Positions 699 through 55,900 of a stretch of 64,000 nucleotides of DNA are shown piece after piece. The DNA lies in assembly GCA_025594325.1 (NCBI GenBank), contig JANHCV010000001.1, positions 3,968,001 through 4,032,000 on the forward strand, given 5' to 3'. Under the pieces are notes generated by a model that was not told the DNA's origin, searched no databases, and saw only the letters and a program-made list of their open reading frames with translations. How positions within the stretch are numbered: position 1 is the stretch's first letter; each line of letters starts with the position of its first letter. This stretch comes from Blastocladiella emersonii ATCC 22665 (Eukaryota > Fungi > Blastocladiomycota). The position numbers and the translations under genes were made by a program.

Positions 699-2207
699 AT
701 GAAAATATCTGCAACTAGAGGCAACGACGCCCTTGACCCGGCCTCGGTGCTCGGCGCGGCCTCCGCCGACCCGGCCGCGATCGCAATCCTCGCCCGCGGC
801 TATGCCGTCGACCGTTTCGTTCGCGATAACCCCCGTTTCGACCCGTCGACGTCGAACTCGCCGATCGGATGGCTCGAGCGTGTCGAGGCGAGTCTCGATC
901 TCGCCGCCGTCCCCACGTCGTACCGCGTCGAGTGCCTGCTCGGTTTGATTGACAGCCCCGACTTCCTCGCGATCGCCAAGGACGAGCTACTCCAGCTCGA
1001 CGACCGCTCCGACTCGATGATGTTCGAGCGTCTTCGCGAGTTCTTTATCGCGACCTTCGCGCCGTACGAGCGCCATCTGGCCGATGTCGCAACTCGCCAC
1101 CTGCGCTCGCTGTGCCCCGACGGCCGATCGGACGCCGAGTTCTACCTCGCTTTCCGCGCTGCTCTTCTCGATATCCCGCTCGGCTTCCGCATGCCCGAGG
1201 CCGAAGCGACGAGCCTCTTCATCGACGCGGTCGGCCGTGACCGCTTCCCCGCCGACTTTGACGCCGATGGCTGGACGCTACCCCAGACGTACGCCGAGCT
1301 CTGCCGCACGACATACCTGGCCGAGAACCCGCAGGCGGCCGAGGAGTCAAAGGAGGAGCCCAAAATTGCCACCAATGAACCCGTCGCCGACGCGCAGGCC
1401 AAGCCCGAGATCGCTGGCGATGCCGCCCCGGTCCCGTCCACATCGGAGGCGGATCTCGCCGAGTCGGCTTCGTCCACCAACAAGGCGGCCGAGGAGATCG
1501 AGGACACGGCCGACGTTGCCGAGTCATCCAAGGATGCGGCCCCCGCTGCTGCCGTCGAGCCGATTGCCGAGCAGGCCAAACCGATCCAGCCTTCGCCGAG
1601 CCCCGCGCGGTCCAAGAAGGCGCGCAAGAAGAAGCCGGCGGCGGGCCCGCCGCCCAAGTCGGCTTCTCCGCCCGCTGTTGCTGCTCAACGGCAGGTCACG
1701 GCGCTGGTCTCGAGCCCTTCCCCCGCCGCCGCTGCCAAGGGCGTGCCCCCGATCGCCATGCCGACGTACAAGTCGCCCGGCCCGATCGAGTGGCACGTCC
1801 CGGCCGCGGGCGACGCGCCGTTCGTCGTCGGCACCATCAACAACGTGCTCGTCGCCGCGCGCCTGCTTCCGTCCACGCAAGAGAGTTTCATCTCGTCCCG
1901 CATCGTGGATCGTGCGGGGCTCAAGATCGACCCGTCCGAGACGGTGGTGCTCGCCGCTCCCGACGGCCCGCCGACCGCGTCGCTGGGTGTCGTCCACGTG
2001 CACTTGGTCGTCGGTCGAGACAAGATTCCGCTCCGGCTTCATGTCGTCAAGGACATGTTCTGGGATATCACGTACTGCCGCGACGGGATCGCGTCGCTCA
2101 CCGTGGTCAACGGCGAGTGCAAGCTGGCCGTCCGCGGCGAGCACGGGCCCGTCCCCGTCATGGTCTTCAAGCGGACCGAGATCCCGCCCTACATGTTCGA
2201 CCGCTGA
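699..2207 (+). CDS. Retrotransposon-derived Gag-capsid + acidic linker + basic patch + aspartic pseudoprotease (copy B, intact)
   Basis: Intronless 502 aa ORF. Gag-like motifs: RFDP..SPIGWLERVE, FERLREFFIATF, LRSLCPDGRSDAEFYLAF, SLFIDAVG. The C-terminus FVVGTINNVLVAARLLPSTQESFIS...WDITYCRDG fits a retropepsin fold with the catalytic D-T/S-G replaced by L-P-S. Confidence 0.8.
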   Translation: MKISATRGNDALDPASVLGAASADPAAIAILARGYAVDRFVRDNPRFDPSTSNSPIGWLERVEASLDLAAVPTSYRVECLLGLIDSPDFLAIAKDELLQLDDRSDSMMFERLREFFIATFAPYERHLADVATRHLRSLCPDGRSDAEFYLAFRAALLDIPLGFRMPEAEATSLFIDAVGRDRFPADFDADGWTLPQTYAELCRTTYLAENPQAAEESKEEPKIATNEPVADAQAKPEIAGDAAPVPSTSEADLAESASSTNKAAEEIEDTADVAESSKDAAPAAAVEPIAEQAKPIQPSPSPARSKKARKKKPAAGPPPKSASPPAVAAQRQVTALVSSPSPAAAAKGVPPIAMPTYKSPGPIEWHVPAAGDAPFVVGTINNVLVAARLLPSTQESFISSRIVDRAGLKIDPSETVVLAAPDGPPTASLGVVHVHLVVGRDKIPLRLHVVKDMFWDITYCRDGIASLTVVNGECKLAVRGEHGPVPVMVFKRTEIPPYMFDR

Positions 2208-3022: not shown

Positions 3023-6000
3023 CTAGTGGTGGTTGACGCTGCGCGACACGCTCTTGAACAGGCGCTCGATATCGGGCGCGCACCGCGTGAACCCGTACTC
3101 CCAGAACGTGTACTGCGGGCCCTTGATCAGCTCGATGAACGTGACGAGGAGGCCCCACGGGTGCGGGCGGTTGGCGATGAGCCGCTCGAGGAGCACACGC
3201 GTGATCTGCTCCTGCAGCGCGTCCTCGGCGCCGCCGCCGGCCGCGAGCGCCGACGACGCGGGCTCGGGTTTGCCGTCGGCCCCGACGGGCGCGGGCAGGT
3301 CCTTCTGCGCGAACAAGAACAGCAGCAGGCCGCTGAAGTAGCGCGTGTGCGCGTTCGGGTACCGCAGATGATTGGCGATGGCCGACAGCACGAGGTACCG
3401 GCCCTCCGAGTCGAGGCGTGCGAGCAGGTCGCGGAAGAAGGCAAACTTGGCCTGGCCGGCGCCGCTGGCGGCCGCGGCGGACTCGTTGCCCGACTCGGCG
3501 GCGGCCTTGGCGGCGGCGGCGGCGCCCTCCTCGACGTCCTCGTTACCGGCGAGCAGAACGAGCGCGCTGATGAGCGCCACATTGTACGTCGAGCCGGTGA
3601 TCTCGTCAGTCGCGCCGTCGGCGAGGCGGAGCTTGGCGACGGCGGCCTCGGCGTCCCACGCGCGGTCGCTGAGCCCGGCGTCGAGCACGGTGCGGCTGAG
3701 CGCGTCGAGCGGGATGACGGGGATGGTGCTCGTGTCGGGGAGCATGTCCATGCGCAGGTTGAACGTGAAGGGGTCGGGGAGGCGCATGGTGCGCGGGAAC
3801 GCCGACAGGATCAGGTTGCGCAGCTGGAGGCACCCGGACGGGATCACAGCGCACAGCGCGTAGTAGTACTCGCACAGGAACTCGGGGAAATCGTGCAGCA
3901 GGACCAGGAGCACGCGCAGCGTGCCGCGGTACAGGTGCAGCGTCGGCTCGCGCAGCCAGCCCTCGCGCAGGAACGGGACCAGGAACCGGAACAGCGCGAG
4001 GAGGAGCCGCGAGAACATGGGCCACCCGCGCCGCTCCTCCTGGAGCAGCAGCTTGGGCATGAGCTGCCGGTGCGCGACGAGCGTGAGCCACGAGAAGGCG
4101 AACCCGGGGAGGAACATGGGTTGGAGCGTGTGGATCGTCTCGGCCATGGACTGCAGCATGTAGAAGTACACGGGCTGGAACCCGGCCTCCTGCGCGTTGA
4201 GCTCGTACAGCAGCGACGACAGCAGGCGGAAGTACGGCCGCTGGTTGAAGGCGCGCTGCTGGGTCTCGTGCGCGGCGACGAGCACGAGCACGATGATCGA
4301 CACGATCTTGTTGAAGAAGGCGAGGCGCGACTGCTGGTGCGGGAGCGGCGCGGTGCCGTTGGCCTCGGCGCCGTCCTTGGCCGCGCTGCTGCTGCCGTTG
4401 GTCTCACCGCCGGCGGCGGGCGCGACGTGGGACTCGTCGTGGTACTTGGTCAGCAGGATGACGAGCTTGGCGAAGGCGTCAATGGCCTGGCACGCCATGG
4501 CGGGGCCGGCTGACACCTTGTACGCCTTGAGCCACGCGTCGATGCTGAGCTCGGTGCACACGCGGAAGAAGAGGCAGAACGTGTCGTCGTTCGAGTAGAT
4601 GACGGACCGCTGCATCTCGCCAATGAACACGCGGAACATGGCCTCGTTGGCGTTCGGGTGCTGCAGGAGCCGCAACCACTCGGCGAACGTGTACGTGAGC
4701 TGCTCGCGGAGCTGGAGCGCCTCGGCGGTCAGCGCCGTGGCCGAGGCCTCGTCGGCCGCCGCCGCCGCGTTCTGCGCAACGCGCTGGCGCAGCGCGACAA
4801 TGAACGCCTTGACGCTCTCGGGCGCCTTGCCCGCCATGACGAGGCGGTGCAGCACGTCGACCGTGTTGAACCAGTCGTTGGGCGTGGCGATCCCGGCGAT
4901 CGCGGGGTTGGTCACGGCAGCGCCGGCCGCCGCGCCCGTCGCGTCCGAGGCGGGGAGCGCGGTGCCCGTGGTCTGCGCGACGAGCTCGATGGCGTACTCG
5001 ATGAGGTTCTTGCCGGCCTCGATGAGGCGGGCCAGCTGCGCGTCGACGTCGGCGACGAGGAGGAGCTGCGCCTTGATGAGCGCGGCCGTGGCCGCGACGT
5101 TGTACTTGCGCTCGTCCTCGGCGTACAGGAGCCACTGGACGACCTCGCGGCCGGCGCGGATCGAGGCGCTGCACAGGTCGCGGAGCACGACCGCGTACAC
5201 CTCGCGGGCGAGGTCCGACGTGGCCGAGTACAGGGGCTGGATCACCTTGGTGCAGAACATGAGCGCGAGGTCGTCGCGCGACGCGTTGGTCGCCGACGGC
5301 AGGAGCTGCGGGACCTGGCGCATCACGACGCGCATCTCGTGCGTGGCGGGGACCTCGGGGAGCGTCGCGTACATGGACGGGGTCGACGTGACCGAGGCGA
5401 GGTGCGACTCGAGGTCGGCCATGGCCTTGGTGAACCGGTCAATCGACTGCTGCAGCGTGACCTCCTCGGACCCGTCCTCGCCGCCGGCGCCCGCACCGAG
5501 CCCGCTCATGCCAGAGTGGATGCTGCCGCGGGAGAACCCACCCATGCCGGCGAGCCCGCCGTGGCCGCCGCCGTACGGCATGCGCGAGTACTCCTCGTAC
5601 ACGGAGAACTGCTGCGGCGTGAGCCCGCCGACCTTGAGGCGGAGCACGTCGGGGAGCCCGGCGAGGCGGGTCCGGTACTCGGCCGCGGTGCCGGGCGGGA
5701 GCTCGTAGAAGGTCTTGCCGACGTCGCGCACCTGCTTGCGCTTCATGAGCGCGGGCGCGAGCTGCTCGTCGAGCTCGGGGATCACCTTCTCCATGGCGGC
5801 GCGCTCAATCAGGCGGCACCCGATCTCGAGGTTGTCGGCAACCGTGACGTGGATGTGCTGCTCCGTGACCTGCTGCTCGGTGACGCCGTTCTGCATCAGC
5901 ATCGAGCGGAGGTACGCGCCCATGTTGAGGCGCAGCGGGTCCTTGCACGTCACGAGCGCGAGGGACCCGGCGAGCTGCTGGCCCATGAGATGCGCGGCCG

Positions 6001-9000
6001 TGCGCACGCGCACCTCGTCGCCCTCGGTGGCAAAGTCCTTGAGCACGAGCTCGCGCGTCGAGATGGCCGCGATCGTGACGGACCGCTCGACGACGGGGCC
6101 GAGCGTCTCGCGGATCGCGCGGTCGAAGGCGACGTGCACGAGCCGCTTGGCGTGGATCGGGAACGTCGGGATGAACACGATGAACGAAGCGAGGTTCTGC
6201 AGCGTGATGTGCGCGTACGCCGCGGCGCCCGCGTTGACGGGCTGCGCAATGCCGCCGGCGACACCGCCAGCAGCAGCGAGGAGCGCGTTGGGCGCGTGCG
6301 CCATGGCGTGCGGGTCGCCGCCGAAACCGGCGGGCGGGTGGCCCATGCCGCCGGGTACGAGGGCGCCACCGGCCGCACCGGCGGGGCCGGCGATCCCGGG
6401 CGGAACGACGACGCCAGCGAGGTCCGCGGCGCCGGGGAGGCCGAGCGGCGCGGCGATGCCGAGGCGGCGGGCGCGCAGGAGCTCGGTGGGCTTGACCTCG
6501 GACAGCTCGATGGCGATGCTCTTGCACAGCACCTCGATCTCGAACTTGAGGTTGAGCTTGATGTCGGCAAAGTGGTACAGCTCGACGAGCAGGCCGAGGA
6601 TGGCCATGAGCCACGGGTTGGGCGGGACGAAGACCGACGAGTGCTTGGCCTGCTGGAGCACCTGGCACACGAATGGCACCACGACCATGAGCCGCTGGTG
6701 GTCGTAGCCCTCGAGGAGGAGCTCCTTGATGGCGAGGTGCTTGTGCTTGATGGGCCGGTCCTGGCCGAGCGTGAGGGCGCCGAGCCACGCGCCAATGTTC
6801 TTGAGCTTGGCGCGCTCGGGCGCCGCCTCGGCCGTGCGGTCCGAGTTGAGCACCGCCTCGGTCAGCACGTACGTGTCGTAGAGGATGCACTTGTCGAGCG
6901 TGCGCGACGCGAACGCGCGGAGGAACGACACGTAGAGCGGCTGGAAGTTGGGCTCGACGGCGGCGCGCACGCGCACGAGGTACTCGGAGAACCACCGGTA
7001 GTAAGCCTCGGTGAGCAGGGCGCGCGCGTCGGCGACCTTGGCCTCGAGGTTGGTCTGCGACAGATTGTTGATGAGGAACAGGATGCGGTCCTTGGCCTGG
7101 TCCGACGGCGGCATGTGCTCGAGCCCGCCCGTGAGCGTCGGGTCGACGACGAGCGCCTTGAACGGCTTGCTCGGCAGCTTCTCCTGCACGAGCTGGATGA
7201 TCTCGGGCGCCGTCTGCACGAGCCCGGGCAGCGTCACGAGCTGCTTGGCAAACGACTGGAACTCGGACACGCGCGGCAGGAACTGGCCGAGCGCGCGCAG
7301 CCCAAAGTGGAACATCTTGGTCGTCTCGGGCTGCGACAGCGACTCGAGGATGAACTTGAGCGCCTCCTCCTGGAGGTTCGGCCCGCCGGCCGCGGCCGCG
7401 CCGTTGGCGCCGCCGCCCTGCGCGGGACCGCCCGTGGGCAGCAGACCGTGTGCGATGAGCTGGCCGAGGAAGTCGGCCGAGAGGGTGAGGTTGCGGTCCG
7501 GGTACGTGTGGAAGAACTTGGCCTCCTCCATGAACGTGGTGACGGTGCAGGCAAAGACGCCCTGCGACGCCTTGTCCTGGGTGTTGCGCAGCGTGACGAG
7601 GTGGTTGATGAAGTCGAGCAGCAGCATCTCCTCCTTGTAGAACATGTCGAACAGGCGCATCGACTGCTCCTCAAAGTCGCGGTGGAACCCGGACTCGCCC
7701 TTGTCGCTGGCGAGCGAGAGCGACGCGAGCGCGGCCGCAAGGTCGGGCGAGAACCCGGACCCGTGGCTGCTGAGCACCGCGACAAAGTGCGCCGCCGTGT
7801 CGTTGGTGAGCGGCGAGTTGGGCGCGTTGAGCTTGACCTTGACGTACTCGACGCACGCGCGGGCAAACGCCTCGCCGTGCTCGTGGATCATCTCGGGCAC
7901 CCACAGCTCGAGGTTGAGGTAGCTGCGGTGCGACGCGAGCGCCGCGAGGTCGAGCGCGAACGTGAGCGGCGTGCGCTTGAGCACGTCGCCCAGCACCTTG
8001 AGGTCCTGGCACACGTCGAGCAGGCGCCGCAGCCGGGAGCTGTCCTCGCGGTGCAGCTCGACCATGCACGCGACCATGGTCGCGGGCGCGTGCGTCCACA
8101 GCCGCGGGAGGACGAAGGCGGAGGTGGGCTTGCCGAGGAGGAACTCCTTGGTGAGCGAGATGACGCGCTCGCCGTGGATACCCGCATCGGGCGACGCGGG
8201 CGCGCCGGCGGGCAGGAGCTGCGCGAGGCCGAGGAGCAGGAGCTCGGGCGCCTGGGCCGAGGCGTTGTGGATGAACTCCTTGACGGCGGCGGTGCACTCG
8301 GGGTGGTCCAGCAGCGCGAGCATGGTGTCGAGCACGTCGAGCGAGTTGAGCGCCTGGTTGGGCAGCGCCGTGATGGGGACGCTGCGGCCGGACCCGGACG
8401 TGGCCATGACGAGCTCCTCCTGCGTCACCACCTTGCGCGTCTCGTTGGCCGGGTAGTCGGCAAAGTTGAACTTATCGGGTGGCGCCTGGATGCTGTGCGC
8501 GACTATGGTGAACTGCGCGTACGCGTTGTGCCACCGGTCGAAGAGCACGTGGATCGGGAACTTGGACTTGGTTGCGCGGCGGTACACGTCGACGATGAGC
8601 TCGAAGCCGCGCAGGTCGCGCACCTGGAACCCGTCGACGTCGAGGCACTTGACGGCCTGCGCCCAGTCGGGGCGGTGCCCGTATTGGTTGACGACCGTGA
8701 CGAACACCTCGAGGTCCCACGTGGAGCGCGGGCTCTTGGTCGCGTTGATGATGGGGGTCCATGGTCCGGGGACGGGGTCCTCGAGGTCCGAGTGCGTCAT
8801 GGCCATGGTGGCGAGCGCGCGGCCGAGCTGCACGGGGTCGCTCAGCGCGCCCGAGACGGCGCGGGCGTTGCCCATGTGCGCGACGAGGCAGCCGTGGAAG
8901 ACATCGGGCGTGTACAGCACGAGGTACCCGGCCTTTCGCAGGAGGGCCGCAATGGACCGGCTACCCAATGAAAGTGTGTGAGTGTCTCGATCGCGTGAAG

Positions 9001-41472: not shown

Positions 41473-43376
41473 ATGGGCAAGTGGACCGACAAGCTGTACA
41501 TCACGCACTCGGAGTGGAGCAACAAGCACTCCGAGGGCGGCCTGTCGTTCGGCGGCGCGAGCGGCAGCAAGCCAAAGTCGCAGTTCCGCCGCCTGCCCTT
41601 CTTCAACTGCGCCCTGTCGCTGCAGCCGTTCGACGACCCCGTCGCAACGCGCGAGGGCCACGTCTTCGACCGCGCCAACATCCTGCAGTGGATCAAGGAG
41701 AATGCGAGCATCAACCCGGCCACGGGCAAGCCGCTCGCCGAGGCCGACCTTGTCCCGCTCAAGTTCCACAAGAACGCCGACGGCGCCTTCCACTGCCCCG
41801 TCACCTGCAAGGTCTTCACCGACTCGACCCACATCGTCGCCGTCGCCACCTCGGGCAACGTGTACGCGCACGAGGCCGTCCAGGAACTCAACGTCGCCCC
41901 CGGCAACTGGCGCGACCTCATCGACGACACCCCCTTCACGCGCCGCGACATCATCCACATCCAGGACCCGACCAACGTCGACCGCCAGAACCTCGACGCT
42001 TTCTGGTACCGCACCCACGACAAGGCGTTCGAGCGCCGCGGCGCCCCCGCCGAGTCCATCAACGCCACGGGGCTGGTCCAGCGCGTCCTCGACGAGGTCG
42101 CCACCACCACCTTTTCGAAAATCGACCCGACGGCGCCAGAACCCGCTTCATCCTCCTCGTCATCGTCGGCTGCTCCCGCCGTCAACGCCAAGTACCAGAG
42201 CGCGACGAAAAAGTCGACGGGCCGCACCGCCGCCTCCTTCACCTCCACCTCCATGGACGTGCGCACCGCCGCCGAGGCCGTGCTCGTCGACGACAACGAC
42301 TTCATGTACGACGAGTTCTGCACCGAGATCATCGACGCCCGCAAGGCCGCCGCCCAGCTCAAGAGCAAGGCCGCCAAGGCCAAGGTCGATCAGGGGCTCG
42401 GCTACGTCAAGCTCAAGACCAGTTTCGGCGACCTCAACATTGAGCTGTTCTGCGTCCTGGTACGGCTTTGCTTCTCGCTCGGCGCCTGTGTTGGATCGAG
42501 ACTGACAAGCGAGTGTAGGCGCCGCGGACGTGCCACAACTTTTTGCTCCTCGCCGCCAAGGGCTACTACAAGAACGTGCCGTTCCATCGGCTGATCCCGA
42601 AGTTCATGGTGCGATTTGCTCGTGACTGCCGCGTCCCAGTCGCGCCGTTGCTCACCCTTCCGCTTACGCAACGTTTAGATCCAGGGCGGCGACCCAACGG
42701 GCACGGGCCGCGGCGGCGAGTCGGCGTGGGGCGGCAACTTCAAGGACGAGATCCGCCCGAGCATGAAGCACAACGCGCGTGGCCTGCTCTCCATGGCCAA
42801 CCGCGGCAAGGATACCAACTCGTCGCAGTTGTACGTGTATCTCGCTCGTCATCGCGTCCGATCCGACTGCTCACTCCTTTTCACTGTTCGTTTAGCTTCA
42901 TCACCTTCGCTCCGACACCCCACCTCGACGGCAAGCACACCATCTTCGGCCGCGTCGTCGGCGGCCTCGACGTTCTTGACAAAATGGAGTCGGTCGCGAC
43001 CACCGCCCAGGACAAGCCCGTCGCGCCCATCACGATCCTGGACGCGCAGGTGTTCGTCGACCCGTTCGAGAAGTGGGCCGAGACCTACGCCAAGCGCCAG
43101 GCCGACGCCGCCGAGCAGAAGCTGTCGCGCGAGCAGCGCATTGCCAAGGAGGGGACGTGGCTCGGCGCGCCCGCTGCTGCGCCAACGAGCGCCGACGGAG
43201 CGAAACCCGTCATCGGCAAGTATATCAAGCAGAACGCGGCGGGCACGGCGGCAGGCAGTGGGTCCATGTTTGGCCCAACCAAGCGGACAGCGAGCGCCGC
43301 CGCGCTGCCGCCAGTTTCGGCCAGCAAGAAGGCCAAGACGCCGAGCGGGAGCGCCGGCGGGTTCGACAACTGGTAG
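41473..43376 (+). CDS. PPIL2: U-box/RING cyclophilin PPIL2 (Cyp60-like)
   Basis: [38 protein letters not shown], then a cyclophilin domain across introns ([38 protein letters not shown]). Confidence 0.9.
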
Positions 43377-43420
43377 GAATCGCGTAACCTGTAAATCATT
43401 ATATATATCATGTCTCAGCT

Positions 43421-44594
43421 CTAGCGATCGAACATGTGCGGCGGGATCTCGGTCCGCTTGAAGACCGGGACCGACACGGGCCCAGTCTCGCCGCGCGCGG
43501 AAAATTTCCACTCGCGCTTGACCATGGTGAGCGACGCGATCCCATTGCAGCCATACATGATGTCCCAGAACGAGATGTCGACGACGTACAGCTTGAGCGG
43601 GCCGCCTGCTTGGGCGTCGGACCAGCCGGCTTCTTCTTCTTGCGCGCCGCCTTCTTTGCGGCCGCAGATTTCGAGGGCTGGGTTGGCTGAGGCGTCACCT
43701 TGGCCTCGGGCACCTCCACGGCCGGTTCAGCCGTTACGTCGGCGTCGAGCGAAGTGGTCTCCTCCGTCGGCGGATCGGCAGCCAGCGGGGTGGTCGCCTG
43801 GGAGGCCGACTCGACGAGCTCCACTTGCGCATCATCATCAACCAAAGCCGGTGCCGACTCGACAGTGTCGACAATCTCGGATTCCGCCTCGGCCTGGACA
43901 GCCGCGTCAGCGGGAGCAACGGCATCGGCCTCGAGCTCGGCCGTTGCCTCGACCGTTTGCGGGTTCTCGGCAAGATAAGTAAGGCGGCAAAGCTCGGCGT
44001 ACGTCTCAGCGAGAGTCCAGCCGTCAGCGTCAAAGTCGGCGGGGAAGCGGTCGCGACCAACGGTATCAATAAAGAGGTTCGTCGCTTCGGCCTCGGGCAT
44101 GCGGAAAGCAGTCGGGATACTGAGGAGAGCTGCGCGGAAAGCAAGGTAAAACTCGGCGTCCGAGCGGCCGTCGGGGCAGAGCGAGAGCACAGGCGGAGAG
44201 TCGCAGCGTCGGCGGCGTGGCGCTCGTGCGGCGCGAAGGTTGCGACGAACAGCTCGCGGAGGTGTCCGTACTGCGCCGAACCAGCATCTTTGTCCAGACT
44301 GCGGAGCTCGTGCTTGACAACTGTGTCAAAGTCAGAGCTGTCGATCAGGCCGAGGATGCACTCGACGCGGTACGAGACGGGGATGCTGGCGAGCTCGAAA
44401 CTCGTCTCGACACGCTCAAGTCAACCGATGGGCGAGTGCGAAGTCGACGGATCGAAGCGAGGATTGTCACGGACAAAGCGCTCGACGGCATAGCCGTGGG
44501 CGAGGGCCGCAATCGCGGTCGAGTCCGCGCAGGCCGCGGCGAGCGCAATAGCCGGATCAGGGGCACCGTTGCCGGTAGTTACATGTATTTTCAT
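43421..44594 (-). pseudogene. Gag-pseudoprotease family copy C (disrupted)
   Basis: TGA at the conserved Trp (44421-44423), a frameshift near 44190, and a deletion near 43600 removing the first half of the protease region. Still ends [13 protein letters not shown]. Confidence 0.85.
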
Positions 44595-44807
44595 GGCGAG
44601 TGAGGGGTTTGAAAGCTTTATGGACGCAGGGATCAGCAACTGCTGCACGCGGCGAGCGGAAAGGCGCTCTCCGCCCTTGAGCGTCACGTTTGCGGCACGT
44701 CACGACTCGCAAACTGCCTCGCACATTTTCGGTACGCGTCGCTCACCCCACACGCGCAATATTAGTAAGTTCAACATGGAGACATGTAATCAAGAGGGTT
44801 GCAACTA

Positions 44808-46430
44808 TTAGCGATCGAACATAGACTGCGGGATCTCCTTGCGGCGGAGGACCACCACGTCCGCGTCGCCCGACTCGGCCAGCGCGCGGAACTTGAACTG
44901 GCCGTTGACGATGCGGAACGACGCGATGCCGTCGCGCCCGTACATGATGTCCCAGAACATGCCCTTGACGACGTGCAGCATGAGCGGGATCCGGTGACGG
45001 CCGACCTCAAAGTACACGTAGACGACGCCCAGGGTCAGCGCACCAGGCGAGTCGGCGGTCTGAACCGACACCTTTCTCGAGGGGTCGATGGTGAGGCCTG
45101 CGAGCTCGACGACGCGGGACGAGATGAAGCTCTCGCCGCACAGCGGGACCAGGCGCGCGGCGACGGACGTGCCGTTGATGGTGCCGACCACGAACGGCGT
45201 ATCGGCGCCGCCGGGCGTGTACGACTCGATGATCCCGAACGAGTCGGAGATCGCGGGCCGCCAGCCGGGCGGCTTGATGGGAAGACGAGTGGTGCTCGAT
45301 GTAGGTGCGGCGGCGGGTTGAGGAGTAGCCGCCGGACTCGGCGACGGCACGCGGGCCTCCTGCAGCGGGCGCGGCGGCGGACCAGTCGGCTTCTTCTTGT
45401 TGCGACTCTTCTTCGAGCGCACGGGCTTGGCCAAAGGCCGAGTCGACTTGAGCTCCTGGGTCGCCTCCGGCATGGGCTCGGTCGTCGTCTCGGCATCCAG
45501 CGAAGCGGCTGGCGCCGAAGTTGGCTCGATGGCCGGCGGCGCGGTCACCTCGGTGGTATTCTCATCGAGCTCCTCCTGCTCCTCGGAATCGACTGGCTTG
45601 ACAGCGCCAGCGGCCTCGGATTCGACCGTCGTCTCGGCGACCGTGCTGTCCGGTGCCGCAGCATCAAGCTTGGGCTCCTCGTTGGAGGTTTCGGTTTCGG
45701 CCGCCTTCGAGTTCTCGGACTCAGCCTCTGCCGAAGTGACCGCGGAGGCCGGTGCGACATCGGGCTCGGGCTCCGCGTCCGACTCGTCCGTCGCCGGCGG
45801 GTGCGCGAGCACGCATTTATGGCGACAGAGCTCCGCGTAAGTCTCGGTCAGCGTCCAGCCCTCGGGGTCAAAGCCGGCCGGGAAGCGGTCGCGGCCGACC
45901 GCCTTGACAAAGAAACCGGCGGCATCGGCATCGGTCATGCGGTAGGGCGCCGGGGTATCGAGGATGGCAGCGCTGAATGCAAGGTAGAACTCGGCATCGG
46001 AGCGGCCGGCGGGAGAGAGCGAGAAGAAGCGCTGGATCGCATCGATGGCGACTTGACGCTCGTACGGCACAAAGGTCGCGACGAAAAACTCGCGGAGCCG
46101 CTCGTAGACCTTGCCCTCCGAGCGGTCGTCGAGCTCGAGAAGCTTGCGCTTGGCGACGGTGACAAAATCGGGGCTGTCGATCAGGCCAAAGAGGCAATCG
46201 ACGCGGTGCGACATGGGCATATCAGCAAGTTCAAAGCTCGCTTCCACGCACTCGAGCCAACCGGTCGGAGAGGTTGAGGTCAAGGGATCAAAGCGAGGAT
46301 TGTCGCGGACGAAGCGGTCCACGACGTAGCCGCGGGCGAGGGCAGCGACGGCAGCCGGGTCGACAGAGGCCGCGCTAAGCGCTTGAGCTGGGTCAAGGGC
46401 GCCGTTGCCGGTAGTTACATGTGTTTTCAT
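44808..46430 (-). CDS. Gag-pseudoprotease family copy D (intact, 540 aa)
   Basis: Same architecture as copy B. Protease-like segment FVVGTINGTSVAARLVPLCGESFIS...FWDIMYGRDGI; ends EIPQSMFDR*. Confidence 0.8.
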   Translation of the reverse strand: MKTHVTTGNGALDPAQALSAASVDPAAVAALARGYVVDRFVRDNPRFDPLTSTSPTGWLECVEASFELADMPMSHRVDCLFGLIDSPDFVTVAKRKLLELDDRSEGKVYERLREFFVATFVPYERQVAIDAIQRFFSLSPAGRSDAEFYLAFSAAILDTPAPYRMTDADAAGFFVKAVGRDRFPAGFDPEGWTLTETYAELCRHKCVLAHPPATDESDAEPEPDVAPASAVTSAEAESENSKAAETETSNEEPKLDAAAPDSTVAETTVESEAAGAVKPVDSEEQEELDENTTEVTAPPAIEPTSAPAASLDAETTTEPMPEATQELKSTRPLAKPVRSKKSRNKKKPTGPPPRPLQEARVPSPSPAATPQPAAAPTSSTTRLPIKPPGWRPAISDSFGIIESYTPGGADTPFVVGTINGTSVAARLVPLCGESFISSRVVELAGLTIDPSRKVSVQTADSPGALTLGVVYVYFEVGRHRIPLMLHVVKGMFWDIMYGRDGIASFRIVNGQFKFRALAESGDADVVVLRRKEIPQSMFDR

Positions 46431-46666
46431 GGTGATTGCGGGGTCTAAAGCTTCATGGGATGGTCATGGGAGGGGAGGGTTGCACAAGGCACTGACCGCT
46501 GTGTTGATGATGGCGTTGCATCAGGTCACGCCCGTTTCCTGTCAAGTCTCGCGAGTTGTCTCGCGCTCGACCTCGTGCGCTCTCCCGGTGCTGGGAATCG
46601 CACGCCAGTTCCGCACACGCTTGGCCGTGAGACAGTGAAGCAAAAACAACAATACAATTCATTCAA

Positions 46667-48302
46667 TCAGCGGTCAAACATGGCCTTGGGGATCTCCTTG
46701 CGGCGGTGGACGACGACGTTCGAGTCGCCATGCATCGTCACGACGCGGAGCTTGAACTGGCCGTTGATGATCTGGAAAGCCGCGATGCCGTCGCGGCCGT
46801 AGAGCAGGTCCCAGAACATGCTGTCGACGACGTGCATCTTGAGCGGGATCCGATGGCGGCCGACGTCAAAGAACACGTAGACGACGCCCAGAGTCCGAGC
46901 GTGCGGGATATCGGCCGATTGGAATGGCATGGTGACCGACGTGTCGATGGTGAGGCCTGCGCGCTCAACCACACGGGCCGAGATTAGGCTTTCGGCGCAC
47001 AGTGGCATCAGGCGCGCGGCGACGGGCGTGCCGTTGATGGCGCCAACTGTGGCGTGCCACGAAGGGCGTGTCGTCCTCGATCGGAACTTTGATTTCGATG
47101 AGGCCGGACGTGGTACGAATCGCAGGCCGCCAGCCGGGCGGCTTGATAGGAAGACGAGTAGTGCTCGATGCGGGCGCCGCGGCGGGTTGAGAAGCGGGCG
47201 CCGGATTCGAGGGCAGCGCGCGAGTCTCATGCGGTAAGCGCGGCGGCGGGCCAGTCGGCTTCTTCTTGCTGCGGCCCTTTTTCGGGCGCACGGGCCTGGC
47301 CGAGGACCGCGTCGGCTTGGCCTGGTCGGCCTCGATCTCGGCCGCACCCGCCGTCCACAACTCGGTGGCAGGCTCAGCGTCAAGGTCAGCGGCAGGTTCG
47401 GCGGCCGGCTCGCCTTTGGCCGTGACGACGTTCGACTGCTCGACGACCTCCGCCATGGTCCCGTCGACTGCGTCTGCTTCGCCGGTCGGCGAAATGGACT
47501 CGGTGACGATCTCCGTGTCCGTATCCTGCGTGGAAGAAGCACTCGCGGCCATGTTGGCGACCTCGGGCTCGACCTCGGGCTCAACCTGCGCGCCGACAGC
47601 TGCCTTGGCAGGTTCATCAACAGTAACCTTGGGCGTCTCCTTAGGATTGTCGGCCACTTGTGGGTTCTCGGCCAAGTACGTGACGCGGCAGAGTTCGGCG
47701 TACGCCTCGTCGAGCGTCCAGCCCGCGGCGTCAAAGTCGGCGGAGAAGCGGTCGCGGCCAACGGCGTCGACGAAGAGATTGACTTGATCGGCCTCGGACA
47801 TCCGGTGCTTGGGAGGAATATCGAGAAGCGCAGCAGAGAACTCGAGGTAAAATGCGGCGTCCGACTGGCCGCCAGGGCGCAGCGAGCGCAGGCGCTGGAT
47901 CGCGGTGTCCGCGGCGGATCGCTCGTGCGGCACAAAAATGGCAAGAAATAGCTGGCAAAGATGCTCGTAGCGTGCCGAGTCGGAGCAATTTTCAAGTTGC
48001 AGAAGCTTTTGCTTGACGACGGCGACAAAGTCGAGGCTGTCGATCAGGCTGAGAATGCACTCGGTGCGGTCCAAAGTCGAGACGTTGGCAAGCTCGAGGC
48101 TCGTCTTTACACGCTCGAGCCAGCCGAACGGTGAGCGAGAGATTGATGGGTCGAAGCGCGGGTTGTCGCGGACGAAACGATCGACGGCGTAGCCGCGGGC
48201 GAGGGTCGCGATCGCAGTCGGGTCGGCGCGCGTCGCGCCAAGCGCAAGGGCAGGATCAAGGACCGGCGCGGTGCCTTTGCTGGAAGTATTGGATGTTTTC
48301 AT
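46667..48302 (-). pseudogene. Gag-pseudoprotease family copy E (single frameshift)
   Basis: Full-length homology from ATG 48302. A 10-nt insertion at 47048-47057 shifts the protease domain into the frame of ORF 46667..48028. Ends EIPKAMFDR*. Confidence 0.8.
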
Positions 48303-48476
48303 GGAGAGTGCAGAGTTCAACGCTTCATGGATCCCGAGGTCGAGGGAGCGGCGACTGACGCGAACGCGGCGCGCGTCAAACTGGCCGGCTCGTCGCGTCG
48401 CTCGCCTCCCGCCAGATCGCTTCGCTGAAGGAAACGCTTGTAATTCAATCATGAAGAGAGATTCGCGATAAAAATA

Positions 48477-49437
48477 TCAGCGATCGAACATGTAGGGCGG
48501 AATCTCGGTCCGCTTGAAGACCACGACGGGGACCGGGTCTGTCTCGCCAAGCACGGCCAGGTTGCACTCGCCGTTGACCACGTACAGCGACGCGATCCTG
48601 TCGCGCCCGTACATGACGCCTCAAAACATCCCGTCAACGACGTGCATCATCAGCGGGATCTGGTCGCGCCCGACCGCCATGTACGCGTAGACGACGCCCA
48701 GCCACATCGTTGGCGGCCCGTCAGGGAAGGTCAGGCGGACCTTGACCGTCTCGTCGATCGTGAGGCCTGCGCGCTTGACGATGCGCAGCGAGATGGCGCT
48801 CACTTCGGCCGACGGCACCAGGCACGCGGCGACGAGCACGTCGTTGATGGTGCCGACGACGAATGGCGCGTCGCCGCCGCCGGGGACGTTGAGCTCGATC
48901 TTGCCGCCTGATCCGCTGGTCGTTACGGTGGCGGGGCGCGGGCTGTTGACTGCGGCGGGTGCAAGCGGGACGTTGGACAAGGGCGCCGCGGCAGGCGCGG
49001 AAACAGGCTGCTGCTGGGGCGACGACACAGCGGTAGCCTGCGTCAGTTGCGTCGGTCGCGTCGGCGGGGCAGCTGCAGCCTGCTTCTGGCCCTTCTTGGT
49101 CCGAACCCGCTTGGCCGAAGGTCGCGCCGTCTTGGACTGCTGGGGCGTGGCCATGACCTCGGCGGCGGCAAGAGCGGCTGGCTCATCCGTAGCCGTCCTC
49201 GACCTCCTCGTCGGCTCTTTGGGCGGGAGGCTCCGGTTCAGCGGGCCCGGCGAGCTTGGACCCGACTTCGGCAGCAGCGGCCAGGTCAGGGGCATTGAGA
49301 ACCAGCTCGGCCGGTTTGCTGACGGCAAGCTTGGGTTCCTCCTCGTTTGGCTGATCGGCCAGTTCCGGTTTGTCGGCCAGGTACGTCGTGCGGCATAGCT
49401 CGGCGTACGGCTCGGCCAGCGTCCAGCCGTCGGCGTG
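48477..49437 (-). pseudogene. Gag-pseudoprotease family copy F (5'-truncated)
   Basis: Homology begins at DGWTLAEPYAELCRTTYLA. It has a frameshift and a TGA at the conserved FW (48621), and resumes to [13 protein letters not shown]. Confidence 0.8.
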
Positions 49438-49608
49438 TTTCATGATCGCGTGATATGTCCTACGCGTCGCGTTTGAGCTCGCGCAACGCCACTGCGGGTC
49501 AAACTGAGCTTTCGTTTGCTCCATAATCGGTGGAATTCAAATCAAAAAACAACAAGGATAGAAAAAAAAAACGGTGGCGGCGTGCGCAGCACCTGGCGCA
49601 GCGCGCCG

Positions 49609-51244
49609 TTAGCGGGCCGGGAGGTCGCGACGCTTCGTCACTGGCACGCTAACCATGCGCTTGCTGATGTCAAGCGCCTTGAGGTCGAACTGCCCGTCGA
49701 TGTTCGAGAACGACTGGACGGCGTCTTTCGCAAAGACCGCGTCCCACGCAATATCGTCCCACACGTACGCGCGCAGCGGGATCTCGTTGCCCTGCACCTT
49801 GAAGATGAGGTTGACGAATCCAGGCGACTCTTCCGTGCCGGCGAGGGACGCGATACGTTTCGGGTCCGTGCGGTCAATGGTCAATCCGGCTTGCTCAACA
49901 ATTTCCGGTGAAACCAAGCACGACTGGGTCTCCGTGTCAAGCAGCGCCAGCGCGGACACCCCGTTCACGGTTCCACACACAAACGGCGTGTCGTCGCCCG
50001 CGGGGCCGTCGATTTCGCCGGCAAAGACCGCAAGCGTATTTTCGTCGACTTCGCCCAGCAAAGGGTTCGTGCTGTCGAGCATCTCGATATTGGGAAGCGC
50101 GCTACGAAGGGCACGGGCCCTGCTGCCATGGCTGCTGCTACTCACGGATCCGAACGTCGCGGGGAAGAGCGGTGCGGCCTGCTGCTGGGCCAAGGCGGAA
50201 GCAAGGTTGCGCGCGCGGTCGGGGTGTGCGTTGCGGACGAGGCGACGCGATACGTCGCGGCTCTTGGCGCGACACTCGGTCACCGCGTGGCCACGACGGC
50301 CGCAGTACTGGCAGTAGCCCTCGGGAACGGCATTATCGACGGACACTGGCTGCTCCTCAGCGGCTGCGGCTGGCTTTGCTTGCCGCTTCGGCTTTGGCTT
50401 GTGGCTTCGGTTTGACCGGCGCGGGCAGTTTTGACGGAATTGAAGCCGAAGGAGTCGCCGGAGCAGCAGCAACTGCGGGGCTGGGCGTGTGAACTTACTG
50501 CACAAAATCGGACTGCGAGTCGACGGAGGGCGACACCGGCGAGGAAATCGTCAGCTCCCTAGGCGCGGGACACAGTTCGGGCTCGGTCTCGGGCTCGACA
50601 TCGCGAAGCCCAGGAGGAGCTCGAAGCACGCGGTACACTTGGTGAAGCGAGTGCTTAGTCGGGTTTAAGCCAGACGGGAAGCGATCGGGACCGACGGCGT
50701 TGTAGTAAATCTGGGCAGCGACAGACTCCGAAGGCCGGGTGTCGGACGAGAAGCTGGCAAGGCATGTGCGGAACTCAAGATGAAAGTCGAGGTCCGAGCG
50801 CCCCGCAGAGCTGAGCGCTGAGAGGCGATCGAGTGCAACCTGGGCCGGGGACTTCGAGGACTCGTCAGGCGCGGGATGCACGAAGGTGCCGGAGAAAAGG
50901 TCGTCGAGGCGAGAGGCTCGCTGCTCGTCGGTGAGATCGGCAAGCGTGGCAAGCTCGTCGTTCGCGTAAACGATAAAGTTCGGTGCGTCGATTAGACCAA
51001 GTACGCGGTTGACCCAGAGCGCGGCGGGGAGGCCCGCGACAGCGAAGCTGTTCTCGATCTGTCGATACCAGGTAGACGGGAAGACCGACGATGCCGGGTC
51101 GAACCGCGGGTTGGTGCGGATGAAGCTTTCGATAACCTGGCTGCGCACAAAGGCCGTGACCGCGACCGCGACCCCACCGGAAGGGCTGGCGAGCAGCGTT
51201 GCGAGGTCGGGCGGGCTGTTGCTGGAAGTTGCATAAGATTTCAT
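49609..51244 (-). CDS. Divergent family copy G: Gag capsid + CCHC zinc knuckle + protease domain retaining the Asp, split over two frames
   Basis: ORF from ATG 51244 (FIRTNPRFDP..STWYRQIE) stops at 50495. The overlapping +1 ORF has CQYCGRRGHAVTEC and FVCGTVNGVSALALLDTETQSCLVS...WDAVFAKD. Could be spliced or a pseudogene. Confidence 0.65.
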
Positions 51245-51593
51245 GGCAGATTTGTGCATCACGAAGTGATATTTCGCAGCGAGGAACGCGTTTACGACGG
51301 CACGACGCGTCGCGCTGCGCGAAGCACATCCGGATGGGCGATCACGCTGCGTCAGCTGATGTCCCGCAGCGCGTCTCCCGTTTCGCGTCGCGCGTCGGTG
51401 GACGCGTCGTTCGGGTGCGATGCTGACCGGGGCCGGAGCCAGGGCCGCCTTGCACCCCTTCCAGGAGATCCCTGCAACGCGTCCGCCAACGCCGCCGACC
51501 CCGCGCCCCTCGCGACATTGCGGAGACCTTTGCAAAGAGCGAGATGGAACAGTCGTCGATGCTTGGCCACCCGAAACCGTTCCCGCGCGCGCC

Positions 51594-52828
51594 ATGATCT
51601 CGTCCTACGCACCGTCCCGCCAGCCCGTCTCCACGGCGGCAGCAGGCTACTCCCGCGGCAGCACCATGAACGCCATTCAAAATGTACTACAACCGCCGCA
51701 ACAAGTGAACCCGCTGCTCGCGGAGCTCAGCGAGCGGCGCGAGGAGGCGCTGTACCGAAACCGCCGCCCGCTCGGTATGCCGGCGATCGCTGGTCCCGCG
51801 CATGGACTGCACTGACGCTCAGCGGCTTATCCTAGGCCGGATGGGCCAGCGCGCGACGGAGTTGATGAGCAACATCCCCGATCCCGATGCTCGCTTCGGC
51901 CGCCCGACTCCAAAGCGTCCGTATATCATCCGATCGGACTCAGGGAAGCGCAAGGTACTTATGATCTTCGTTCGCGCTAGCCGAGTCGCAGATCACGGAG
52001 CTGCTGCACCCATCGGTCGAAGGCGCGGACCCGCAGCCTCTGCAGCGGCGCGCTGGAAGCAGCGGAGTACACGCCGGCGCAGGTACGCTGTTCGGCGAGA
52101 TCGCTCAGACGACACGGTTGACTTGATCGTCTCATCGATCGTTTAGGTCAGCAGCTCTCGCGCCGGTACGAGGGGTTCGACAAGGAGGCCGCGTACGGCG
52201 TCCCGGTCGCCGACGTCGACTGGTCGGGGTCCAAGACGAAGCACTCGCTTGCTTGGTTTGTCTTCTCTCGCTCCGTTCTGCATACCAAACCGCTGATCGC
52301 AACCGTACATGTAGGGCCGAGCCCGACCGGCACATGGAAACCACGTCGCAGGCCCTCGGCAAGGCCGTGCTGCGCGGCCACACTGCGCTAGGCTCGAGCG
52401 ACGGCGCTCGCCACCACAACTCAGCCGCGGCCGCCCGCGCAAGCTGCCGCCAGAACGCCGACCGTGACCACCGCGACATCCTAACGTGGTCGGGCACGAG
52501 CAACGGTACCACCGATGCCCGCAAGCCCGACCAGTCGCGCACATGGGCGAGCTCGCGGAACCACGAGCTCCCGCCGGCCGGCTCCCGGCCGCGCGGCGAC
52601 ATCGTGCCGCCGCCGCTCGAAGCCACGACGCTCACCAACGCCGATATCAACGCCCTCGTCTCGTCCAACGTGTGGGCGGCCGCGGCCAAGGGCCGGACGT
52701 TGTGGCCATCGACGGGAAGCGTCAGCGCCATGGGCCACTCGGGCGCGGCCACGCACGGCGGCTCGGTACGGCCGCAGAACCAGGGTCGGCCGCCAGCGCG
52801 TGTGCGCCGCGATGGCCTCGACCACTGA
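51594..52828 (+). CDS. EFHB/CFAP21-like flagellar microtubule inner protein (multi-exon, tentative)
   Basis: Spliced segments ERREEALYRNRRPLG..FGRPTPK and GQQLSRRY..AYGVPV..SGSKTKHSLAW resemble EFHB N-terminal motifs as I recall them. No EF-hand seen. Confidence 0.5.
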
Positions 52829-52958
52829 GAGATCCCCCTCATCTGACATTCCTCGTGTACATTTGCCGTTATTCCAGATGCATTTGATATTTATTCCAGC
52901 CTCGAGGAGAGAAAAAAGTCATGTATCACATACGAGCAACAATCAACATCCATCCCAG

Positions 52959-55900
52959 CTAGCTCGAAGTCCCAGTCGACGTGGTCGCCGCGCTGATCGT
53001 CTCGCCGGCGCCAAAGTCGGTCGAGTCTTCTTCCTCGTCGACCTTGGCCTGGACCGGGACACGCGCAGTGGCGGCGGCAGCGGGTGTTGCCGTCGCGGCC
53101 GGAAGCCCAGGAGGTGCGGCACCAGCAGCCACGGCGGCCTTCTTCATGTACTCGGCGAGCGCGGGGTTGGCCGCCGTGATGGCCTTGACCTGCTCCTCCT
53201 GCTTGCGCGCCTCGGCGGCCTTCTTGTCCTCGGCAGTTGGAACGGGTTCGGGAACAGCGGCAGCCGCGGGCTTGGGCGACTTGTCGCGCGCGGGGGGCTG
53301 CGCGAGACCAGGCGGCGACGACGACCGGCTGCCGAGCCCGGTTGCCGGAGCCGGAGTAGCCGATCCAGTGACAGCCGCGGCAGCGGCGACCGCGAGCTTG
53401 GTCTTCTCGGTCTCGTCGAACGACACGAGACGCGGGCGCGCGGCGTCGAGGTCCTCGGCGTCGTCGTTGGTCTCGACAATGTGCTGCTCGCGGGCGCCGA
53501 ACGCGACGCGCTTGCACGCCTCCTCAGTGTTGACCTCGTGCTCCTCGTCCGTGGTGGTGAAGGCGACGTGGCGGCCGACCGACGCGAGCGACTCGCGGGA
53601 CCCGGCCTCGGTGTCGCGCGACAGGATCACCACCTTGCGCTCCTCGCGGTGCACGCACGACCCGGTCACGGACCCGTGGTGCGACGCCGACTCGAGCCGC
53701 TCGAACAGCTGCCGCGTACCGGACCCGAGCAGGTCCTCCATGGACGACCGCGTGCTGTGGCCCGCCGAGTGGCTGCCCTTGACCAGCAGCTTCTTCTCGA
53801 ACGTCGAGAGGTCCGAGATGAGGCTCTCGCGGCTCATGTGCACGCGCCGCGGCTGCGCGTCGATGTCGGCGAGCGGGTTGGTCCCCGCGGCGGCGCCGGC
53901 GGGGCCGACCTGGTCCGCGAGCAGGCGCAGCTCGGCCACCGACATGTCCGAGATCAAGCTGTCGCCGCTCTCGGCGCGGCTGATTCGGGCCGCGGGCATC
54001 TCGTGCTGCACGGGCACCGGAGCCGGCGTCGCCGCGTGGTCGACGGTCGGCGAGTGGGCAAAGTCGCGCGAGCTGCGCTTGGAGAGGATCTTGAGCTCGG
54101 ACGACGACAGGTCCGAGGGCACGCTGCCCGTCGCGTCGGCGGCGGCGAGCGGGACCGTGGAGACGGGCGGCGGGCTCGACGTGCCGTTGGCGCGCACCTC
54201 GCCGACGGACCCGGCGGTCATGCCGAGCCCGTAGTTGAGGCCCGAGGTGATGATGGGGTCGCTGACCGCGGCGCCGAAGCTGATCTCGCGCGACCCGCGC
54301 TTGGTGAGGATGCGCTTCTCCTGGCCCGACAGGTCGTGCGGAACGCCGCTGTCCTCGGACCCCGAGTCGTTGAGGTCGCGCGAGTTGCGCTTGACGAACC
54401 CGACGCGGCCCGACGACCCGAGCTCGTTGTTGTTGTCGATCATGACCGTGCTACCGATTGAGATGGACCGGCGCTTGGTTCCCATGAGCGCTGCGTTGGC
54501 CGACGACCCGCCGCCCATCTCGTTGTAGGAGAGCACCTCGCGCGACCCGCGGCGGCTGCTCCGCGAGTACCCGCCGGGGAGGACGGCCGTGTCCGAGCCG
54601 TAGCCGCGCGTCGGCGACGACGGGGACGACTCGCCGGCCTTGCCGCGGAGAATGCGCAGCTCGACGGCCGAGATGTCGCTGATGAGCGACTCGCGGCTCA
54701 TGTGGCCCTGCATATCCGTGTCCTCGTCGTTGGTCAGGCTGTCGGCGGACGAGTCGCGGTCGCGGTCGCGCTCCCGCCCGCGGGTCTCGCGCAGGCCGCG
54801 CTTCGCGGTACGGCGGCCCTTGGACGGCGACGCGTTGATGGCCGAGAGAGGGTCGGGAAGGATCGGGCGCGGCGACTACAATTGCACTGCGCGGTTAGTG
54901 ATGCCCGCTATCGAGCGCGTCAATGAAGGTCGTACCTCGGTTTCCACGATGTGTCCGACCGGGTTGACCCTACAATCGCTTGAGTCAGTTCAGGCCCATC
55001 AATGGTGTCGCGCGAAGTTGTGGATAGCGCACCGTCCTGCGGGAATGGACACTAGATGAGCAGGAGAAGTGTTAGCATCGTGCGATTGACCGCGGCAGAG
55101 CCGGCAGGGAAGCGTACTCTGGTGAAGCAAGACACGCAGCTGGGTCACCTCGAGCTTGAGCTCGTGCTTGGCCGTGCGGGTCGCGTCGAGCTGACGCTCC
55201 AGCTCCTCGTTGCGGCGGTACTACAGACAGCAGTCAACACCTTAGTGACCGCGTAGCCTCGGCTGTCGTGCAGCGCCATACCTCGCGGTCGAGCCGCTGG
55301 ATGAGGCCCTGGCACTCGGTCTGCCACTTTTGCTCCGACTGCTTGAGCGCCGTGACGTTTTCCATGGGCGAGCTCTTCTGGAGCTGGCTGATGGCGTGCT
55401 CGAGGCTGCGGCGGACGTCGGCCAGCTCGCGCTGCAGCTGCGCGGTCTCGCCCGAGCTCATGCGGTCCGACTACGCACGGACACGAGCGCGTCAGTCGCT
55501 ACTTCGGCAGCGGAGCAAGGAAGGTTGCGTACCTCAGTGGACCGCGGGCGATCGCTACGAGCGTGCTGGAGCTCCTCCTGCAGGGCGGCGATCTGCTTCT
55601 GGTACTGGGTGACGATCTGGCGCGTGGCGAGGAGCTCGGACTTGACGCTCTCCTCCTCGCGCATGAACCGCTCCATCTGTCGCTTACGCTCGTCGAGCAG
55701 CTGCTGGTCGGCTACACTCGTGCAGGCGCGTCAGTCACGCTCGGTTGAACGTCAGCTGCCAGCGTCGTACAGCTCAGCTTGGACTCTTGCAGGCGCAGCT
55801 TGCTCATGTACTCGGCCTGCTCGCGAGCGCAGCTCGCACGAGCCCTATTCGTGCGCGAGCGGTTAATCGAGCACGCTGGCGGCATGAGGAAAGGGAAACG

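Follow-up and report, generated by a model that had tools for sequence, protein, structure and literature searches.

A candidate host-adopted capsid gene family retaining a predicted noncatalytic retropepsin fold in Blastocladiella emersonii

Seven paralogous genes and gene remnants were found in a 64,000-nucleotide stretch of DNA (the window) from Blastocladiella emersonii ATCC 22665, located at about positions 3,968,001 to 4,032,000 in the interior of the 5.14-Mb contig JANHCV010000001.1 of assembly GCA_025594325.1. Full copies are predicted to encode a retroelement-type capsid (CA) domain and a C-terminal domain that has the fold, and lacks the catalytic motif, of a retropepsin protease (PR). 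The explanation favored here, with modest confidence, is that they form a lineage-specific host gene family derived from the gag-pro region of a long terminal repeat (LTR)-type retroelement, in which two members (copies B and D) are working host genes. This reading draws on the predicted folds of both domains, on signs of purifying selection among copies whose protease is dead, and on the absence of retroelement machinery at the two loci. Co-option of retroelement Gag proteins is well known in animals; the family described here belongs to an early-diverging, flagellated fungus.

RESULTS

Seven paralogs at two loci

With the intact copy B as the tblastn query, all seven paralogs listed in the original prediction were recovered: five form a head-to-tail minus-strand array (43421-51244), and the remaining two lie on the plus strand (139-2207). 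They keep the letters A to G of that prediction, assigned by ascending coordinate. The E-values of the seven stretches matching copy B, ranging from 1e-16 to 1e-142, are far beyond chance. Start-to-start spacing within the array is 1.81-1.87 kb, and the spacers of 213, 236, 174, and 174 bp (174-236 bp overall) agree with the 170-240 bp first estimated. The description of the array as five genes requires correction: D is its only intact member, C and F are heavily degraded, E is frameshifted, and G bears a stop codon together with a frame change. Of the seven copies in the window, only B and D are intact; the other five are broken or shortened.

Full copies have the layout originally proposed, with a conserved N-terminal domain (CA, ~215-230 amino acids [aa]), an acidic and Ala-rich linker, a Lys/Arg patch, and a retropepsin-like C-terminal domain (~135 aa). 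The linker, described as disordered, is 150-190 aa in its variable length, is also rich in Pro, Ser, and Thr, and has the Lys/Arg patch at its end. At the patch position, copy G has a canonical CX2CX4HX4C zinc knuckle, hence the retroelement order capsid-nucleocapsid-protease (CA-NC-PR), and the copies other than G have the basic patch in place of the NC knuckle. Copy B (699-2207, plus strand) is a single open reading frame (ORF) of 502 aa, with CA at about 699-1343, the acidic Ala/Pro linker at about 1344-1799 including the basic patch at 1608-1637, and the retropepsin-fold domain at 1800-2204. Copy D (44808-46430, minus strand) is a single ORF of 540 aa, with CA at about 45777-46430, the basic patch at 45387-45419, and the retropepsin-fold domain at 44811-45215. 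The NCBI model of copy D begins at an internal Met and is 72 codons short.

Predicted capsid domain

An AlphaFold2 model of the CA domain, built from a shallow seven-row alignment of the copies, has ten helices arranged in two lobes, with a mean predicted local distance difference test (pLDDT) score of 85. When this model was compared to the PDB with Foldseek, the best nine of nine matches and most of the top 30 were retroelement capsids, with probabilities up to 0.99-1.0. These include MLV CA (probability 0.99), HTLV-1 CA, dArc1, dArc2, and BLV CA; the C-terminal lobe domain (CTD) of PEG10 CA is also among the top matches (template modeling [TM] score of 0.73 on the target; root-mean-square deviation of 2.4 Å), and further matches comprise PNMA2, Arc, Copia, Ty3, and HIV or SIV CA. 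As the E-values are weak (0.06-2), with global TM scores of 0.3-0.46 as expected for lobes held at differing angles, the evidence for the fold lies in the consistency of the match list. The top BFVD matches are of the same kind, being retroviral Gag, Penicillium metavirus ORF1, and caulimovirid coat proteins. At the level of sequence, the Pfam family Retrotrans_gag (PF03732) was matched by copy E below threshold (E-value of 0.008-0.025; 15.3 bits versus a cutoff of 24.1) and by none of the other copies, and searches of PDB sequences with a CA-domain profile and with phmmer returned nothing relevant.

According to the structural model, the N-terminal ~215 aa have the two-lobed capsid fold of the Ortervirales, in keeping with the retroelement capsid-type domain of the original prediction. 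The narrower label of Ty3/gypsy-like did not survive, its basis being the sub-threshold Retrotrans_gag match. Assignment to Ty3/gypsy, Copia, or Bel-Pao was considered and rejected, since the fold matches span all groups, with Copia, retroviruses, and caulimovirids represented as well as Ty3, and do not discriminate among them.

Relatives were sought in several collections. A word-index protein search with copy B returned five proteins, all from JANHCV010000001.1, and a query of the same index with the knuckle-protease ORF of copy G yielded nothing beyond the gene model of that ORF. Exact matches of the proteins are confined to the genome contig. An exhaustive hidden Markov model (HMM) search with the CA profile against 1.84 billion representative proteins yielded four proteins, all from the window, and among JGI metagenome contigs searched with a three-copy CA alignment, none of 350 pattern matches was confirmed. 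As far as any search shows, the family is lineage-specific and has no detectable relative in the databases searched. Invisible to sequence searches, it is recognized by fold only, and similar families may be overlooked elsewhere.

Retropepsin-fold domain without a catalytic aspartate

The model of the C-terminal domain (pLDDT of 84) matches the RVP domains of Ddi1 in Foldseek comparisons (E-value of 1.6e-6; TM score of about 0.7). All thirty PDB fold matches with E-values of ≤1e-3 are Ddi1-type or bacterial retropepsin-like proteases, and retroviral proteases (EIAV, XMRV, HIV, SIV, FIV, and foamy virus) follow just below, at 0.002-0.012. Likewise, a five-copy profile of the domain matches the RVP domain of Leishmania Ddi1 (5yq8) with an E-value of 5e-6, in an alignment that places the catalytic Asp of DSGA opposite Pro, and copy G gives weak, sub-threshold Pfam matches to Asp_protease_2 and gag-asp_proteas. 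Both the model and the profile indicate that the domain has a retropepsin fold.

The position of the catalytic Asp is occupied by Pro in copies B (motif stretch 1860-1886), D (45129-45155), E, and F, and by the first residue of D-T-E in copy G (49921-49944); the region is deleted in copy C. The D-[TS]-G motif of peptidase family A2 is absent from every copy that retains the site, and farther along the domain the G-R-D structural motif persists in the form (G/C)-R-D-G. Because Pro replaces the catalytic Asp, the proteins encoded by B, D, E, and F, as judged from their sequences, cannot act as aspartic proteases. The protease of the original prediction stands as a fold and falls as an enzyme.

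A cellular, Ddi1-type paralog that never belonged to a retroelement would account for the identity of the best solved-structure matches. Such an origin is the most improbable of the explanations weighed here: the N-terminal domain is predicted to be a capsid fold instead of a ubiquitin-like domain and a helical domain, the catalytic Asp is absent, and the two domains of the basal copy G flank a CCHC knuckle. Moreover, few LTR-retrotransposon proteases are represented in the PDB, which biases the top matches towards Ddi1.

Purifying selection and the question of dead relics

The ratio of nonsynonymous to synonymous divergence (omega, dN/dS) was estimated from three or four paralogs, both by NG86 with bootstrap and by maximum likelihood under GY94+F3X4. 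For the intact pair B and D, NG86 gave omega values (bootstrap 95% interval) of 0.28 (0.18-0.41) in CA and 0.54 (0.35-0.86) in PR. Among B, D, and E, all of them protease-dead, GY94+F3X4 gave 0.16 in CA and 0.08 in PR, and omega = 1 was rejected with twice the log-likelihood difference (2dlnL) at 137 and 100, respectively; inclusion of copy G changed the values to 0.19 and 0.09. The two methods give different magnitudes of omega in PR, because bias in the G+C content of third codon positions (GC3) affects the synonymous rate (dS), but neutrality is rejected by both. The dN/dS check suggested in the original prediction, with omega below 1 and neutrality rejected for both domains, came out in favor of constraint. 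Since omega is far below 1 among copies that share the dead protease, these estimates indicate that CA and PR were both under purifying selection after protease death. Downstream of its frameshift, copy E has accumulated 39 unique changes versus 19 in the intact D (p = 0.012).

The main rival explanation is that the copies are decaying gag-pro remnants of an extinct retroelement, multiplied by unequal crossing-over, in which B and D are merely still unhit. It accords with the five broken or shortened copies, the dead protease, the lack of orthologs elsewhere in the protein search, and a GC3 lower than that of host genes, and is nevertheless considered rather unlikely in view of the low omega in both domains among copies that share the dead protease. 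In neutral simulations at the observed divergence (0.2-0.3 substitutions per site), ORFs of the length of B and D, about 1.5 kb, remained open in ≤1% of trials, and two copies are open. In addition, copy B has accumulated about half as many unique changes in CA as E or D at the first and second codon positions, with similar change at the third.

Several observations nonetheless weigh against B and D being working host genes. In a comparison of small counts, the rates of the broken copies C and F are not significantly elevated over that of B. GC3 is 0.81-0.84 in B and D and 0.74-0.78 in the broken E and G, and the intact copies are thus below the neighboring housekeeping genes (0.92-0.96). Pairwise omega averages over the time since duplication and would mask the recent inactivation of B or D. 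Five of the seven copies are broken, so loss is frequent, and with no ortholog in other species among the databases searched, retention across speciation cannot be demonstrated. The domestication originally proposed accordingly holds in part: B and D are intact ORFs that appear to be under purifying selection outside any element, which makes them candidates for domestication in the usual sense, with syntenic orthologs in other species and expression.

DNA-level amplification and absence of element machinery

No LTR-like long direct repeat was found in 42500-53000, and searches of the window revealed no relevant inverted or terminal repeats, primer-binding-type tRNA matches, tRNA genes, or Rfam families. 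No Pfam Pol domain was found among the annotated genes that flank B and D within ~10 kb in each direction, and the ORFs that separate copy G from the next gene (51254-52887) gave no Pfam match. As originally stated, the components of an autonomous Ty3/gypsy (Metaviridae) element, namely reverse transcriptase, RNase H, integrase, and LTRs, are absent from both loci in these repeat and Pfam searches. Downstream of each copy, the next copy or a host gene lies within 174-236 bp, and the annotated neighbors are ordinary: CNOT1, an EMP24 protein, MBOAT, a PPIL2-like cyclophilin, a clathrin-adaptor sigma subunit, and a proteasome ATPase.

At the DNA level, the copies are homologous throughout the coding region and over about 28-35 nt of 5′ leader, and the homology ends at the stop codon. 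The leader of copy B, at 671-698 (plus strand) directly upstream of its ATG, is homologous to minus-strand leaders at 44595-44623, 46431-46459, and 48303-48330, and nothing else in the window is related to the family by DNA homology. The head-to-tail array, together with homology confined to the coding sequence and short leader, demonstrates that the family was amplified at the DNA level; amplification of this kind, as assumed in the original prediction, is upheld, with no retroelement boundary at the ends of homology.

A nonautonomous gag-pro mobile element, dependent for mobilization in trans on an autonomous LTR element at another genomic site, would share the gag-(NC)-pro order of LTR elements. 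This alternative is very improbable, given that no LTRs, primer-binding-type tRNA match, or terminal repeats were found at the loci, that the copies stand head to tail with spacers of 174-236 bp, and that DNA homology does not reach beyond ~30 nt from the ATG on one side and the stop codon on the other. The dead protease also speaks against it, as does the HMM search, in which the CA domain occurred in no other annotated protein of the species or elsewhere.

Phylogeny and exchange among copies

In nucleotide trees, copies A and G lie on long basal branches, and the other five (B, C, D, E, and F) group in a single clade (support of 98). The branching order within this clade is not settled, and the CA and PR trees disagree on it, D and E being paired (support of 99) in PR only. 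The conflict between the two trees and the restriction of the D-E pairing to PR suggest exchange between array members, by gene conversion or unequal exchange. The nucleotide identity of D and E is 77% in the protease-fold region (44811-45215 versus 46670-47044) and 68% in the capsid region (45777-46430 versus 47643-48302). Copy B is 41 kb from the array and in the opposite orientation, yet it belongs to the young clade and has the same 5′ leader. An inversion or segmental duplication that separated A and B from the array was considered and set aside, as homology between the copies extends only from ~28 nt 5′ of the ATG to the stop codon, which leaves the flanks uninformative.

Every clade copy that retains the region shows both Pro in place of Asp and loss of the knuckle; these two changes most simply predate the expansion of the young clade. 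With two copies intact and five decaying, the family is undergoing birth-and-death turnover.

The common ending of copies B through F noted in the original prediction is present: their C-termini read EIP..MFDR-stop, and that of copy G reads ..DLPAR-stop. The last ~10 residues (R/K-x-E-I-P-x-x-M-F-D-R) are conserved in the five young-clade copies, pseudogenes included, and absent from G; the corresponding tails are at 2175-2207 (B, plus strand) and, on the minus strand, at 43421-43453 (C), 44808-44840 (D), 46667-46699 (E), and 48477-48509 (F). The tail may represent a short linear motif or contribute to a dimer interface.

Broken copies and gene models

Copy A (139-594, plus strand; tblastn similarity over 175-594) is a fragment of the capsid domain, limited to its first ~140 aa; a stop codon at 490-492 ends its ORF, and similarity goes on in frame to 594. 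Copy C (43421-44594, minus strand), a pseudogene delimited by tblastn, is disrupted by an in-frame stop (44421-44423) and a frameshift (near 44184-44190); it has also lost about 120 codons of the linker and protease domain, with a second frame change, and retains the last 60 codons. Copy E (46667-48302, minus strand; basic patch at 47256-47288) is full length, with a single frame change (within 47047-47058) where the protease-fold domain starts. Copy F (48477-49434, minus strand) is degraded, with most of the capsid domain gone and, within the protease-fold domain, a frameshift and an in-frame stop at 48621-48623.

Copy G (49609-51244, minus strand) is the basal and most retroelement-like copy. 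Its CA domain (50498-51244) is ended by TAA at 50495-50497, and a frame change falls in or near a 19-bp tandem repeat (2.4 copies) at 50372-50414 in the linker, such that the CCHC knuckle (50272-50313) and the retropepsin-fold domain (49612-50004) are in another frame than CA. As many as 46 GT..AG pairs would bridge the break and reopen the frame, hence a frame test for an intron is nondiagnostic. The TAA is embedded in a consensus donor, CA/GTAAGT (50495-50503), and a candidate intron, with a weak AAG acceptor, spans 50498-50405.

The lesions of the broken copies are probably real, because the assembly was built from PacBio HiFi reads and polished with Illumina reads (PMC9730499). The NCBI models H9P43_001522, H9P43_001524, and H9P43_001525 (43408-51595) are artefactual, with introns placed to skip the stops and frameshifts of broken copies; H9P43_001525 fuses the protease-fold part of copy G with the linker and protease-fold part of copy F.

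Beyond the family itself, the PPIL2-like cyclophilin/U-box gene (plus strand) lies tail to tail with pseudogene C (minus strand), their stop codons 45 bp apart (43376-43421). Divergent from G and situated before the next gene, an annotated 328-aa gene at 51594-52828 (plus strand) has no Pfam match, either as annotated or in its ORF pieces, and is unlike the Gag family. The G+C content is 63-74% across the window, and long spurious ORFs are common on every strand. Very long ORFs antisense to real genes, such as those of 492 aa opposite D and 1437 aa opposite CNOT1, occur at 44799-46277, 3026-4513, and 4658-8971 (all plus strand), among others; they are nongenic and result from the 65-70% G+C.

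DISCUSSION

If B and D are working host genes, as is favored here, their products would act through protein-protein contacts and not through catalysis. CA-CA assembly would be one such contact and dimerization through the retropepsin fold another, while the basic patch may bind nucleic acid or act as a nuclear-localization signal. A protein of this kind could serve as a decoy or dominant-negative Gag that coassembles with an active retroelement or virus, or heterodimerizes with its protease, and so prevents particles from assembling or maturing, by analogy with Fv1, Ty1 p22/p18, and DRT2. Lineage restriction and rapid copy gain and loss fit genetic conflict, and the decoy role is for this reason favored among the mechanisms, if only tentatively and by analogy; to be set against it is that restriction is inferred from architecture and analogy only. 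It is also possible, although doubtful, that a selected dead retropepsin constitutes a dimerizing or protease-poisoning module beside an assembling capsid, making the protein a two-pronged decoy against retroelements or viruses, or a new type of endogenous capsid, within a family of rapid turnover.

A different role would follow if B and D resembled Arc or PEG10, forming closed capsids that package RNA by means of the basic patch, to transfer or store it, with no action against retroelements. The two-lobed CA fold resembles those of dArc, Arc, PEG10, and PNMA2, a basic patch is kept at the position of the zinc knuckle, and CA shows purifying selection, so that the structural evidence is identical to that for the restriction role and only the inferred function differs. 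Rapid copy gain and loss and confinement to one lineage, however, better fit a conflict-driven family than a housekeeping one, and the zinc knuckle is lost; an endogenous capsid of this type is accordingly judged quite unlikely.

Functional B and D genes would represent an independent co-option in an early-diverging fungal lineage, and the retention of the protease fold past catalytic loss would point to a noncatalytic role of a retropepsin in a domesticated Gag. The copies would also form a natural series within 50 kb, leading from an ancestral-like copy with the knuckle and Asp to derived intact copies and to pseudogenes, from which the order of domestication steps could be read. To our knowledge, a selected pseudoprotease attached to Gag has not been described. 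Should the host-gene reading be correct, the family would be the first domesticated Gag reported in the Blastocladiomycota and the first with a selected pseudoprotease.

Fungal co-option of Gag is documented in few cases, comprising three single-copy Dikarya genes and yeast DRT2. Among 14 deep gag co-options, Wang and Han reported three from fungi, all single-copy and all from Dikarya, and did not mention the Blastocladiomycota (PMC8321522); this phylum is also missing from the species tree of a kingdom-wide screen for co-option of transposable elements (PMC10799480). DRT2 is an exapted Gag-CTD restriction factor, a relic at a fixed locus in a fungus (PMC13709905). The B. emersonii copies probably constitute a new host-adopted capsid family.

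In common with other co-opted gag genes, the B. emersonii copies are gag-derived ORFs without LTRs or pol that lie among host genes, have a predicted CA fold, and show purifying selection; tandem duplication is also known from such genes (dArc1/2, the RTL8 triplet, and plant Crtg9). In contrast to the known fungal cases, which are single-copy, restricted to Dikarya, and conserved across families, the present family is, as far as the searches reach, limited to one Blastocladiomycota genome, is multicopy and mostly decaying, and has kept a retropepsin fold. Mouse Fv1, Ty1 p22/p18, and yeast DRT2 are likewise capsid-derived and detached from a replication-competent element, and hinder capsid assembly. 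They consist of CA or CA-CTD without a protease fold, however, and their restriction activity has been demonstrated, whereas for the B. emersonii family restriction is a putative role.

Among solved structures, the Ddi1 RVP domain is the best match of the C-terminal domain (TM score of about 0.7; E-values of 1.6e-6 by fold and 5e-6 by profile). Ddi1 itself differs in its active D-[ST]-G-A motif and its UBL, HDD, and UBA domains, in place of which the B. emersonii proteins have Pro or D-T-E and a predicted upstream capsid fold. A parallel in domain content is offered by PEG10 (and RTL1), where a capsid domain, a nucleic-acid-binding element, and a retropepsin domain are likewise combined in a host gene. 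PEG10 retains an active DSG protease and a programmed frameshift; the B. emersonii family, in contrast, has Pro at the position of the catalytic Asp (B, D, E, and F), is encoded as a single ORF, and carries a Lys/Arg patch that replaces the knuckle.

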